Both the position numbers and the translations under genes were made by a program. Positions 12,554 through 19,517 of a stretch of DNA of 64,000 bases are shown in pieces. Below the pieces are notes generated by a model that ran no database searches, was not told the origin of the DNA, and worked only from the letters and a program-made list of their open reading frames with translations. The stretch lies in assembly GCA_025603075.1 (NCBI GenBank), contig MU626270.1, positions 62,001 through 126,000 of the forward strand, read 5' to 3'. The number at the start of each line of letters is the position of its first letter. Position 1 is the first letter of the stretch. Source of the stretch: Neoconidiobolus thromboides FSU 785 (Eukaryota; Fungi; Entomophthoromycota).

Positions 12554-12658
12554 ATATGCAGTTGTATTTTGTGTTTAAGAATTTTACTAGCAATTTTTCC
12601 GCTCAGGTAGTGCTTAAAAGATAGAAAAAGTAATGAAGCTAAAAAAACACCCTCATAT
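12554..12658 (+). mobile_element. MITE copy 4
   Basis: ATAT|GCAGTTGT...ACACCCTC|ATAT. Confidence 0.9.
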
Positions 12659-12773
12659 ATTTAATACAGATCCGTTAGTAAAATAAGTATTTATATATAA
12701 CTCCGTAAAATATTGCTAGTCTATTATTACAAGAATCATTAATAAAATCGCTACATTATATGGCAAAATGAAA

Positions 12774-12813
12774 ATATGAGGGTGTTTTTTTGGCTTCATT
12801 ACTTTATGCAGTA
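12774..12813 (-). mobile_element. MITE copy 5 (right-end fragment)
   Basis: ATAT|GAGGGTGTTTTTTTGGCTTCATTACTTT; the rest is unrecognisable. Confidence 0.8.
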
Positions 12814-14170
12814 GATTGTAATGATATCGTAAACACATATATATTCTGCTCTGAATATGAAAATAAATAGTTGAGTTTTTAATTGCGTTCGATAGCAAGT
12901 TCCAGAGACCTGACTCAATAAAATAATTATGCTATATTATCATAAAATACGTCAAATGTCCTTTTAATTGAATTACTTTCAAACCTAGTGTTGTGTATAA
13001 ACTAAAAAAATACACCAAGGTTTATAAAATACGATGTATATGTATACTGTTTATAGCCGTCATATATGTAAGATGAATATCTTATAAATTTGTCATAACA
13101 TAATAGTTAAAGAATGACTAATCAAGTAATGAATAAAATCAGAATAAAGATAAATTTCTTGAAATTTAGTTTTTATTTATAAAGATATGTCCAATAACTA
13201 AAATTATTTCAGTCTTTATAATCACCTTGTATTAAATGTATTCTATTATATAACTTTAAAAGACTTACCACCAAAAACTTTGTAATACATATCAATAATT
13301 CTTTATTACGAATACAGCTGTTATTCTTTAATCTTTATATTTTTTATTAATGTATTATTTCTATGATCTCAGAATTTTAATAGTGAAATAAAATGATATA
13401 CCGGAAATATGTTTTGTAAAATTACTACTTATTAATTCCATTAAACATAAAACAGTTGCTCTTGTTGTAAAGTATTATTATAAATAGGTAATGTTTAAAA
13501 ATACTACAGCATTATGATACAAAATTAATCAAATTAACTTAAAGTGAAATCAAATACAATTATAAAAACCAATAACTTTAGTTGAAGATTTATAGCCATT
13601 AATTTTGATTTAAAACAAAGTATATAATTATGCTAAAATACTACATAGAATACTAAAAAATACTAGTTTAACAAATTCATTTTAACAATATTATAATCAA
13701 ATTCATGTTAAAACTCGTAAATTATTGAGACATTTGACAAAGATAAACAAAATATGAAATAAAGACATATACTATTAAAGCAACCAAATGCTAATAGCCA
13801 CATACTAAAATATTATCTGATTACTATTTATTTAAATTATATAGCTATACTTAGTCATATTTAAGACTTCAATATGTTTAATCTTAATATTCTAATTTGA
13901 ATTCTAAAATCGTAAAATTTGCATAAATCATAAAATTAACAAAAAAAATAAGCAGAACATAATATCAAGTTAAGACTTAGTGAGAAATATTCTTCCTTTT
14001 CACATCCTACAGCTTATACTAATTGTAAGGTGAGTTATTTGATTCAATAAGATATATAAAAGTGAAGGAATAAAATCAATAGTTATCAATAGCAGAAAAA
14101 ACAGAAGACCAAAAAATATTTTGATGGATGTAATTGACTAATTTTCTTATTCTAGACGGACTAAAATAAA

Positions 14171-14997
14171 ATGGGTGGTAAGATCAAATGTTAAATATAA
14201 TATAATTCTGGTTTTAAATGAGGTTATAGCCTATAAATACCTCGAAGAATTAAGCAAAAAGAAGCAATCTGATATCATGCGCTTCTTGCTCCGTGTAAGA
14301 TGCTGGGAATACAGGTTAGTCCTTATCCCTTAGGTTATGTTGAGATTTATCTCTTCATTCCAATGACTAAGCATTACACTTCAAGTTTCTAACTTAATTT
14401 TTTTATGTTAATTCCTTGCCAACATCAGACAGCTCAATGTAATTCACCGTGCTTCCCGTCCATCTCGCCCAGATAAGGCTCGTCGTCTCGGTTACAAGGT
14501 AAATATATAACTACAGCAAAGCATACAAAAACTAATGATTTTAGGCCAAACAAGGTTATGTTATCTACCGTGTCCGCGTCCGTCGTGGTGGTCGTAAGAG
14601 ACAAGTAAAGAAAGGTGCCGTTTTCGGTAAACCAGTCAACCAAGGTATCAACGAACTTAAATCAAAACGTTCCCACCGTTCAATTGCTGAAGAACGTGTT
14701 GGTCGTCACTGCGGTGCTCTCCGTGTCCTTAACTCATACTGGGTTAACCAAGACGGTACCTACAAATACTTTGAAGTCATTTTAGTTGATCCAGCTCACG
14801 CTGCCATCCGTCGTGATCCTCGTATCCAATGGATCACCAAAGCCACTCACAAACATCGTGAAATGCGTGGACTTACCTCCACTGGTAAGAAAGCCCGTGG
14901 TATTGGAAAGGGTCATGCTTTCAACAAGACCATTGGTGGTTCTCGCAAGGCCTCTTGGTTACGTCGTAACACTACTTCCCTTCGTCGTTACCGTTAA
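14171..14997 (+). CDS. RPL15: 60S ribosomal protein eL15; 3 introns
   Basis: MG|[29 protein letters not shown]|[23 protein letters not shown]|[19 protein letters not shown]...LRRYR*. Strong codon bias typical of highly expressed genes. Confidence 0.98.
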
Positions 14998-15467
14998 ACT
15001 GTTTTTCATTTATAATGGTAGTCAAAATAATTTAAAAATAAAATCACTTTATTGTGATTTTACACTAACCGAATTGAATAGAATTTTACAATTTACAGTA
15101 ATAGGCTTTATCGATTTTATTTGGATTTTATAAGGATAGCGAGATAATAATTCATGTGTAAGAAAAGCAACCTAAAGGACAAAAATGGAATTTGATTATG
15201 TTAAGTAGAATGAACAAGATTTCAATTAGAGGCCATATCAAAATCTAGTTATTGATTTTATTTATATTGTCTATTTTGGTTCTTATACAATACATACTGG
15301 AAAAGTTATTAAAATGGAAAATGAACTCTTATTTGAAGTGCAAATAAGAAAACTAAAATACTAGTTATGAGTATAAGTTATTTAATACAAAACACTTATT
15401 TTAAATTTATTAGCAAATAAAAAATACTACATATTGATTTAATAAAATAATGTTATCTAACACTAAA

Positions 15468-18400
15468 TTATTCATCAAGTTCGCCTTCTTCCAGATCATT
15501 TTCTTTTGGAGGAGAAGGTGGGTTAGCCAAAGGAGGACTAAGGGCCTGACTTTGGTGATTGAAACCCTTATTTTCAATAGGCGGTGGTGGTGGATTGTCT
15601 TCTGGAGGTTTAGGATGGTGTGCCTCAACATTTTGAGCTTCATTTTGATTCATAAGATTCGAATTGGTCGGAGTAATAATATGGTTATTATCAATAATGG
15701 GTTGGTCTTTATGTTGTGTTTGAATATTGTTGGCTGCTATCTTTTTATGGGCCATAAAATATTCATGAGAAAGCCTTTCTTCAAATTTAATAATTTCTCG
15801 AGATTGGAATAAAAAATCCAAAGGTGGAATCTATATTTAAGATTAGTTTAAAATAATAAAGTATACTGATGTTATTACTTGAAGTTCTACTCTCTTTTCT
15901 TTGTCTTTTTCAACTCTTTGTTTAATTTCATCTTCAATTTGTTTCTTTCTTTTAGCAACTTCTCTAAAAAAAGATGAATATTAAATATCAAAGATTGATA
16001 TAACTATACCTAGCAATCTCCTCATCACGTGCTAATTGTCTTTCCAGTCTTTCCTTTCGTTCCTGGTCAGCTGCTTCTTTCGTAGAAGGCTGAAGTTTGG
16101 GAGTGACATTAGATGTATTATTATCTTTATATAATTTGAGTTCAGGGTTAACACTAGTAGCGGGCTTCTTTTGAGTATCAGACGGAGATTTATTTTTTCC
16201 CTTTAATTATTAAGTAGCTTTTCGTTATTAATTTATATGTGGTTACTTGTAAAGGTGGATCACTTCTTTGCTTTTCAACAGGCTTAACCTGATTAAAAGC
16301 TTTGGCTATAGTCAATTTTAATATGTCATAATTAATTAGTGAACTAACTACCTTTAGGGGCTATTGTATCATTCTTGTTTAATATTTTTTCAGGCTTTGT
16401 TATCTTTGACGGTAGAATAGGCTATATTAATGAGTATTTAATTTTAAACAAATAAAAACAGTGTTTTACCCTATTGGATTTACGATTTTCAGACACTCCA
16501 TAAGAATCTTTAAAAAGAAATATAAGTTAAAAATGTAATTATTTTTTTATTAAAATAAATCATTTGCTTAGGGTATAAACTTAATATATTAAGCACCCAT
16601 AGTAATTAAAGTAAAGTATTAAACTACTTAGTTCCTTATAATAAGTAAAAAAAATCAATCGCTACTACCTGAAGTGCTTGATCCAGAGCTTGAGTCTGAA
16701 TCTGAACCAGATGATTCATCTGTTGAACTTAAATCTCTTTTATGGGATGTTTCTTTACCTAATTTCAAATTATTAAGATAGAGTTACTTCTCAACTTTAC
16801 TTTATAAAGTAATTAATTACCTGTTTTTTTATAAGATGCTGGTACATGAGTTGAGCTCTGTCTGCTATCAACATTATGAGCTATTTTAGCCTGTTTCCTT
16901 TTTGGGTTTTCAACCACTTCATCGTATAATCTTGCTAAAGTGGTATTGTCCAATGAATTAACATCAAGCTCAATAGCTTTATTTGCCTAAAACATTTAAA
17001 ATTTGGAAGTCCAATAAAAAAATAAAATACCCCAATAATTTCTGGCATTGATTGACTAATAATATCTACAACTGTAGTTAATTGATCACCTTCTAATTGA
17101 TTTATAACAGCACTCAATTCAGTCATTTGTTCCATAGTAACAGGTGGGTATTCTTCATAATTATTTTTTGTACCACTTTCTTTAGATTTTCCACTTTTTA
17201 CTATATTTTTGATTTTATTTGCTGCAGGTTCATTTATATGCTTTCTTTTAACAGGTCTAGGGTCCTTTCTAACAGGCTTACTTGGTCTTGTACTTTCTTT
17301 GGTTTGCCTTTGTGATCCTAGAAATTTTCAATACAACAAAAATAGATTGAAAATAAATTACTATCAGTTTTGATTGGTACAATGTCATCTTCTGATGTTG
17401 TTTCATCAGTACTAAGTCCATCATTTATAGAGGCAGACAAACCACGTCTAGCTTCCCATTTTTTCTCAAAGACTTGTTCTAATCTTTTCCCCATCAAATA
17501 TACTTGGCCTGATGGAGGATTATATTTATAACAATTTGTGAATATTAAACGAATATCTGCGCCAAACTCATCTACCGTGTTATATTTTCCAGTATCAAGC
17601 TTGGTCTTTGCAGTAGAAAAATCCATAGGATGTTTTACAATGATTGGGTAATCTGGTATATTCATTTCTTCCCAATCTACTGGTTGAAGGAAAGGGAATG
17701 AATAGGCATTGTGTTTTTTATGAAACATTTCTTTTATCAAATTCTGACAAAATTCATAATGTTCTGCTGGCATTCTTGATTTTGAAATTCGCGTATTTTC
17801 TTTATGCAAACCATTACCATTTGTGTGAGAACCTTTCCTTAAGGGCTATTTACCTTTTAAATGTTTTTTCTTTTTAAAAAAATAAAAATTACTTGTTTGG
17901 GTTTGGGTTTAGGCTTAGTTCTTGATATTTGATGAGTGACTGGATTTGTAGTTTGTTCCAATATTTCGGTCTAATTTATAAGTTAGAATATTGTGAAGTG
18001 AAATTCAAAACTTACAGCATGGGAAAAATCACGTTTATATTTGTTAAAATAAGCTTCAAGCTTGCTGGCCATAACAGATACAGGTGCATCTTTTCCATTA
18101 TATAAATAACAATTATCGAAGATTTGCTTTATATCAGAAAAAAACTCATCAACACTATTATAATCACAAACGATGAGTTTTTTATCAATTGTATCTATAT
18201 CCATTGGCCTTTTAATAATTGTTGGATAATCAAGTAGCTTAAGCTTTTTATAATCAACTGGTTCAAGGAAAGGGCCTGCGTCAGGGTGCCTACGCATCGC
18301 TTTAATAATACTACTACATTGTTTTAAATCATCTCTTGACATTGTTGGCCTCCTTAATGGCTGTAAAATAGGGGTAGTTCGAGAAGGCTACAGAAATGTT

Positions 18401-18843
18401 AAAGCCTTTTTTTTTTTAAAAAAAAAACAGTTAAATACCTTAGGCCTGCTTCTATTTTTAGAAGCGCTTTGTTCAGGAAGATTTCCTGAATCAATATGTT
18501 CTTGGATTTCTCTTTCTGCATTAGAATTATTTCCATTACCGTATGAATTATTTTCTTTATCATCGCCGCTTATTAATTTTTGCGATTCAGGTGATGAGAA
18601 ATTTCCATCTAAAATGTTTATTTAGGCGTTTTTTTTTGAGAAAAAAAGATAATCCATACTTTGTGTAATTGGCAGTGAATTTAAAGGTTTTTTCAAGTCA
18701 GAATCTACTTGGTTATCATTATCGACAATTTCCATACTAAAATGTGATTTTTAATTAAGAAAAAGTAGATATAGCAAAATAATGAATTACTTATCGCTTT
18801 TATCAACATTGGGAATCTCATAATCCGATACTTCGTGATTCAT
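15468..18843 (-). CDS. BDF1: BET-family double bromodomain protein (BD1, BD2, ET domain, long C-terminal extension); multi-exon
   Basis: BD1 GPFLEPVD...NCYLYN (17983-18342), BD2 FPFLQPVD...NCYKYN (17318-17809), ET domain ELSAVINQL...IELDVNSLDNTTL (about 16920-17135), then a charged helix and Pro-rich tail to the stop at 15468. Confidence 0.92.
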
Positions 18844-19517
18844 ATTCACCAAAAAAATAAAGATTTGTAGTTATTTAGAGTCAAAGAATAAATCAAATAA
18901 AGAGCTTTATTTTAAAAAGATATAAATTTGTTGAAAAAAATATCTTAAGCGGTATAAACTGGATGGATGCCCTAAATTTTCTTGCTAAAATAAAAGAAAG
19001 ACAAAGTTTTAATGTTAAATTAAGGAATTAAAAAGTAGGCTTAGAAAATCTTGGAAATTGGTTTTGCTTTTCGCCTCAATTACGTAATTTGATTGGCTAT
19101 AAAGAGTTTGCCTATATTTAAGCAAATCATTTTTGTTGCCTATGGAAATTGTTAATTTTATTTGACCCTGGTTCCCTTTTTAAAATCTTATATGTTCAAG
19201 TTTTTATGAAATAATCCTACCATTTAATGTCCTTTCATAAAATATCATTTAATTGAATTCAATACTATTTTATATTGAGCTATTAAGCGTATTTATATAA
19301 ATTATAGAAATGTCAAAACTGAAGTAAAATCTAGTATTTAAAAGCAATGAAGGGTAAAAATTGAATCATTATTACTTGTAATTATAGTTGGAAGCTATGA
19401 TTTCTCATTTTTAAAATATCTGCCATAAAATCTTTAAATCAAAAACAACTATTAATGAAATGAATTTAAGACCATTTTATTCATTTATTTTACTAAATAG
19501 AGTAGTCACTTAATTTA

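Follow-up and report, generated by a model that had tools for sequence, protein, structure and literature searches.

The BET gene and its transcripts

We analyzed a stretch of 64,000 nucleotides from Neoconidiobolus thromboides FSU 785, henceforth referred to as the window. Its minus strand carries an AT-rich and intron-rich BET gene (15468-18843) that comprises 15 exons and encodes ~860 amino acids, from an ATG at 18843 to a stop codon at 15470-15468. The first three exons, E1 (18843-18791), E2 (18736-18660) and E3 (18608-18439), are followed by E4 (18387-18016), which encodes bromodomain 1 (Pfam PF00439, E 8.8e-22), by E5 (17970-17893), and by E6 (17845-17362), which encodes bromodomain 2 (PF00439, E 1.2e-21). 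The ET domain lies within 16821-17317 and is interrupted by an intron (17030-16987) that separates its 5′ part in E7 (17317-17031) from its 3′ part in E8 (16986-16821). A Ser/Asp-rich stretch is encoded by E9 (16758-16669), after which E10 (16507-16470), E11 (16421-16352) and E12 (16305-16247) lead to the C-terminal exons. There, a charged stretch starts at the 3′ end of E13 (16200-16010) and fills E14 (15963-15879) with 28 charged residues, the last four of which read VELQ; E15 (15830-15471) starts with IPPLDFLFQSREIIKFEERL and encodes 100 further residues rich in Pro, Asn and Gln. We followed the reading frame exon by exon and found it uninterrupted between the start and stop codons.

An intron-containing eL15-like gene (ribosomal protein L15) lies on the plus strand at 14170-15000, tail to tail with the BET gene. 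At 12620-12800, ~120 nt of AT-rich sequence lie between inverted repeats of ~30 nt (…AAAAAACACCCTCATAT… and its complement) in a MITE-like arrangement.

We aligned the contigs of four public runs, presumed to derive from RNA, with positions 15400-19000 of the window. Run X1 contains a 3525-nt contig that skips all 14 introns of the BET gene, with GT..AG at every joint and 0 mismatches. Because it lacks every BET-gene intron, we consider this contig a spliced transcript. The two 3′ introns (16009-15964 and 15878-15831) have GT..AG ends and are both spliced out in it, and therefore the charged end of E13, the whole of E14 and the start of E15 are contiguous in the mRNA. The second of these introns is also spliced out in contigs of the three other runs. 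The initial annotation had spliced the small 3′ exons by hand, and correctly so. It is extremely improbable that the joined frame is an artefact of the gene model, with the motif located in a different frame or outside the translated portion of the mRNA, given that the contig joins 16010 to 15963 and 15879 to 15830 with 0 mismatches and that the frame stays open throughout.

A public protein model (P0001, N. thromboides FSU 785, 745 amino acids) corresponds to the transcript from a Met in E4 onwards and contains the same joined E13-E14-E15 sequence. Tests on the joined C-terminal sequence used this model, and the gene itself was searched exon by exon. The X1 contig further supports three in-frame upstream exons on the minus strand (18439-18843), which add ~115 N-terminal residues beyond the start of P0001.

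The domain content is that of a true BET: P0001 matches PF00439 twice in tandem (145 bits) and, after the second bromodomain, the ET profile PF17035 at residues 355-416 (55.3 bits, cut-off 24.5). When all six frames of the 24.6-Mb assembly were searched, PF17035 matched at this locus only. A search with the bromodomain 2 exon retrieved mostly multi-bromodomain proteins, along with P0001 and fungal BETs. In a full-length search, the closest database name of many fungal relatives was ‘bdf1’, and the named fungal BETs of that search carry no PF17105 annotation.

A retained intron and a possible short BET

The longest intron of the gene (16508-16668) measures 161 nt, compared with 44-62 nt for the other 13, and lies directly 3′ of the Ser/Asp-rich stretch of E9. 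It is spliced in X1 and in one X6 contig and retained in contigs of X2, X4 and X6 that lack the introns next to it; the X4 contig that retains it has other introns spliced. In transcripts with this intron, the frame would run on for four codons to a stop that precedes the entire C-terminal module, and the product would be a short BET from which the module is missing.

A C-terminal module conserved in early-diverging fungi

We searched 250-380 proteins with jackhmmer, seeded by the C-terminal block of the window protein alone and with no animal sequence. The module was recovered in Entomophthora muscae, Massospora cicadina and a further relative (P0152), in the long BET of Basidiobolus ranarum, and in Mycoemilia scoparia and Spiromyces aspiralis, both members of the Kickxellomycotina. 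It was also recovered in Calcarisporiella thermophila, in Haplosporangium/Mortierella, Podila and Linnemannia (all Mortierellomycotina), and in one chytrid, Quaeritorhiza haematococci. Among the BETs sampled from Mucorales, from Umbelopsis and from Dikarya (seven proteins), none matched the module. It is conserved in the long BETs of several early-diverging fungal lineages. In the resulting alignment of fungal modules (A1), at least ~30 charged helical residues are followed by a short break and by the pattern D-h-h-x-Q-[S/N/T]-x-h-[M/I]-x-x-[F/Y]-E-x-[E/D]-h. The motif is internal in every fungus, with 16-294 residues after it. In the window protein there are 97-100 such residues, rich in Pro, Asn and Gln; the initial annotation had described a further Pro-rich tail of about 95 amino acids here.

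AlphaFold2 run on A1 predicts a helix at 2-29, a break at 30-35 (LQIPPL) and a second helix at 36-59, with a mean pLDDT of 88.7. In P0001, the module corresponds to residues ~590-660. Mapped onto the gene (all minus strand), the charged helical stretch rich in Lys, Glu and Arg begins in translation at the 3′ part of E13 (16010-16086). Predicted helix 1 occupies E14 (15879-15963) and, from the AlphaFold2 model and the hhalign register, would be the counterpart of helix 1 of the BRD4 PID. Codons 1-20 of E15 (15771-15830) encode the break (IPP) and the motif LDFLFQSREIIKFEERL, with which helix 2 starts and which would be the counterpart of BRD4 PID helix 2 (NFQSDLLSIFEENLF); codons 21-33 (15732-15770) encode the rest of predicted helix 2. 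Beyond it lies a variable tail (15471-15731), rich in Pro, Asn and Gln and with an acidic end, which has no Pfam match and no counterpart in animal BRD4. Structural look-alikes of the segment in the ESM Atlas were generic helical hairpins only and therefore uninformative.

We compared contigs of related strains or species with the window. The differences are mostly transitions, and all counts given here are approximate and refer to the best-supported differences listed. From codon 39 of E13 to codon 33 of E15, 5 synonymous changes and 0 replacements are among the differences listed, whereas the flanks show 13 synonymous changes, 16 replacements and a 3-nt deletion (Fisher P 0.046 for synonymous versus replacement changes among those listed). 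Within the module, the listed changes at 16010-16086 are all synonymous, and none of those at 15732-15770 alters an amino acid; in the variable tail (15471-15731), 9 of the 17 differences listed change the amino acid and one 3-nt deletion is present. Runs X2, X4 and X6 contain two versions of the gene (seen at 17317-17364 and 16010-16199), one identical to the window and the other ~5-10% different. Where E6 meets E7, the splice site of the divergent version is slightly different.

Comparison with the vertebrate BRD4 C-terminal domain

The similarity to BRD4 is faint when single sequences are compared. The motif of the window protein aligns without gaps with a BRD4-type C-terminus from fish (P0138, ...IDMNFQSDLMAIFEENLF), with 8 of 17 residues identical (D, F, Q, S, F, E, E, L), which confirms the gap-free alignment D..FQS.....FEE.L of the initial annotation. 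Taken by itself, this match is only suggestive. Relative to the core motif I-D-M-N-F-Q-S-D-L-L-S-I-F-E-E-N-L-F, identity is 8/17 in the window protein and 10/18 in Basidiobolus. Only the Q, the hydrophobic M/I position, the aromatic residue and an E are kept across the fungi, so that the expected conservation of FQS and FEE in orthologs was not borne out as such. The Pfam profile BRD4_CDT (PF17105), for which the lack of a significant score had been proposed as a refutation, found no match at E ≤10 on the exons, the genome in six frames, P0001 or the C-terminal segment of P0001. Its gathering threshold is 27 bits, and the positive control, P0138, scored 82.6 bits. The best fungal score, 11.6 bits (E 0.2), came from Basidiobolus (P0155), the one fungal member that touches this profile at all. 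With hhalign, the single window segment reached a probability of 30% (P 5.7e-4) against the vertebrate CTD profile. Comparison of single tails with phmmer gave nothing significant, and neither did HMM-to-sequence scores between the fungal and vertebrate sets in either direction. A word search with residues 600-665 of P0001 matched only P0001 itself, a result that says little because shared 5-residue words were required.

Profile-to-profile alignment placed the fungal module and the vertebrate BRD4 CTD/PID in register, at a score far above shuffled and reversed controls. We compared A1 with a 12-sequence vertebrate CTD alignment (A2). As A1 was built without any animal sequence, the comparison is not circular. 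The hhalign alignment, with a probability of 94.6% (P 6.7e-8, score 37.6), spans 38 columns, contains a single gap and ends at the animal C-terminus. Against this score of 37.6, 200 column shuffles of A2 averaged 8.7 (SD 2.4, maximum 18.9), 200 column shuffles of A1 averaged 11.1 (SD 2.3, maximum 20.2), and reversed profiles scored 13-14. With the charged helix removed, the motif alone scored 20.0, ungapped and in register, versus 6.8 for its shuffles (SD 1.8, maximum 14.6). The hhalign probability was 89-93% when the window sequence, Basidiobolus or both were left out, and Basidiobolus alone (IDLTHQALVMAAFERDLF) reached 87% (P 4.1e-6) against the vertebrate CTD. When 262 non-fish proteins (238,000 residues) were scanned blind with an HMM of the vertebrate motif, the top two domains were located inside the fungal module, in register. 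We note that the vertebrate CTD set consists of teleost fish only, which makes the animal profile narrow.

Three proteins from protist transcripts, some of them MMETSP (P0044, P0064 and P0034), lack an ET domain and contain five or six bromodomains; at their C-terminus, T-x-D-L...A-L-A-S-Y-I-D-N-L comes after a long Arg/Glu helix. This region reaches an hhalign probability of 81% (P 1.3e-5) against the vertebrate BRD4 CTD, mainly through the Arg/Glu helix, and 2.6% against the fungal module. Arg/Glu helices can evidently score well in such comparisons.

Contact residues and the elongation machinery

The BRD4 PID consists of two helices, 1318-1342 and 1349-1362, of which helix 1 lies on the CDK9 C-lobe through R1325, R1329, E1332 and R1335 (cryo-EM preprint PMC13622488, 2026). 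The equivalents of these four residues in the window protein are D, Q, E and K in the hhalign register, which is uncertain inside the charged helix, and the four columns vary among fungi. Fungal conservation falls on helix 2. In BRD4, the LL motif is functional and the RRRR cluster is among the motifs that are necessary (Itzen et al., PMC4081074). All fungal members have a hydrophobic residue at the position of the second Leu of LL; in most of them it is Met, which fish BRD4 has as well. The counterpart of the RRRR cluster in the window protein is K-E-K-R; the RKR and RRRR clusters are not kept.

We searched the genome for components of the animal elongation machinery. Six-frame searches for NELF-B (PF06209), NELF-C/D (PF04858) and HEXIM (PF15313) found no match. 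N. thromboides thus seems to lack the animal context of pause release and 7SK, but the evidence for absence is weak, as these searches were exon-wise and lacked a positive control. One locus (L003, G000:C15:89438-92458) encodes a CDK with PITAMRE, the only PITA-x-RE CDK in the genome, and another (L002) encodes a transcription-type cyclin that is a candidate partner of it; both genes have small exons. The end of the C-lobe of this CDK reads ...ITAAQALEHPYFHTLPYP. In a tentative alignment of this end with human CDK9, all four residues by which CDK9 contacts BRD4 helix 1 would be replaced.

Interpretation of the module

The segment is most likely a diverged fungal BRD4 CTD, conserved in early-diverging fungi and with a putative function. 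Of the initial claim that this fungal BET carries a BRD4-like C-terminal motif, the likeness itself has held up, in the form of a conserved module in register with the vertebrate CTD; recognition by the Pfam profile has not, and the helix-1 contacts are mostly not kept. With modest confidence, we lean towards a reading in which the segment is a homolog of the CTD of animal BRD4, BRDT and Fs(1)h-L, diverged from it, whose helix 2 docks on a fungal Cdk9-cyclin pair. Helix 2 would insert between the activation loop of the Cdk9-type kinase and its cyclin, like helix 2 of BRD4, and helix 1 would contribute less, or differently, to the kinase contact. The chromatin-bound BET would in this way bring or activate the elongation kinase. 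Given the poor conservation of the helix-1 contacts and that NELF and HEXIM genes were not found, the BET would be expected to recruit or stimulate the kinase and not to release it from a 7SK/HEXIM store.

The explanation that competes best with homology is that the module is a helical element specific to fungal BETs with another job, such as dimerization or the docking of another transcription factor, and that its likeness to BRD4 is convergent. The failure of the Pfam BRD4_CDT profile, the helix-1 contact residues that are not kept and the internal rather than terminal position of the motif would all fit such an element. Short amphipathic helices can converge, and the 81% reached by the protist multi-bromodomain proteins without ET points in the same direction. 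We nonetheless regard convergence as rather unlikely: the motif without its charged helix still scores 7 SD above shuffles in exact register, and the protein family, the position after the ET domain and the helix-break-helix layout are all shared with BRD4.

It is far less probable that the resemblance arose by chance in a low-complexity tail that has no function. The weak single-sequence match (P 5.7e-4, probability 30%, no phmmer match), picked from a scan of many windows, is what chance could produce, but the segment is conserved across fungal subphyla, close relatives show only synonymous change in it while the flanks vary freely (among the differences listed), and the profile-level match is far above the controls. 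We rejected chance on the shuffle controls and the conservation, and the gene-model artefact on the spliced contig.

To our knowledge, reviews and recent papers assign the C-terminal motif of BRD4 to the long BET isoforms of animals and state that it has no yeast equivalent. In the limited collection of literature that we consulted, we did not find a BRD4-type motif described in fungal BETs. Since the module is present in the long BETs of several early fungal lineages, the BRD4-type tail is probably older than animals, with P-TEFb binding as its putative function, and, judging from these sequences, an origin of the BET-P-TEFb tail before the animal-fungal split is plausible. More tentatively, we propose that the link between BET and P-TEFb through PID helix 2 is ancestral to fungi and animals, was kept in fungi that lack NELF and HEXIM, possibly alongside a short BET, and was lost in Dikarya. 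This ancestral link may persist in the long BETs of zoopagomycete, mortierellomycete and some chytrid fungi. If this is true, the tail that connects BET proteins to the elongation kinase dates to the opisthokont ancestor or earlier, its origin is separate from the origins of NELF-dependent pausing and of 7SK/HEXIM control, and simple organisms are available for testing the minimal function of helix 2. The Pfam model of BRD4_CDT appears too narrow for the fungal relatives of the domain.

Comparison with known systems

We compared the module with the CTD (PF17105) of BRD4, BRDT and Drosophila Fs(1)h-L. As in these proteins, it is located in a BET protein after the ET domain. As in the BRD4 PID, a charged helix is followed by a break of ~6 residues and an amphipathic helix, in the fungal case according to AlphaFold2. 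It also shares with the BRD4 CTD, in register, a D, an aromatic residue, Q, S, a hydrophobic pair, a second aromatic residue, E, E and L. The differences are that the fungal module stays below the Pfam threshold for BRD4_CDT, that its motif is internal with ~100 residues after it whereas the animal CTD is at the extreme C-terminus of the long isoform, that the basic clusters of BRD4 are replaced by alternating Lys and Glu, and that the window protein differs from BRD4 at three of the four positions in contact with the CDK9 C-lobe. N. thromboides may produce both a long BET and, by retention of the long intron (16508-16668), a short tail-less one. Such a pair would mirror the long and short isoforms of BRD4 and Fs(1)h, whose short forms resemble the tail-less BET predicted here.

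The yeast proteins Bdf1 and Bdf2, which are Dikarya BETs, have two bromodomains and an ET domain like the window protein, whereas the seven Dikarya BETs that we sampled are without a match to its C-terminal module. In yeast, a link to the CDK9 homolog Bur1 has been reported via the ET domain and not via a C-terminal tail (bioRxiv 10.1101/2025.05.12.653540). The N-terminal helix alpha-0 of AFF4 has the pattern R-x3-R-x2-E-x2-R as in BRD4 helix 1 and uses the same CDK9 C-lobe surface (PMC13622488). Unlike AFF4 alpha-0, fungal helix 1 does not have this pattern, and the similarity of the fungal module to BRD4 sits in helix 2, the part that AFF4 lacks.
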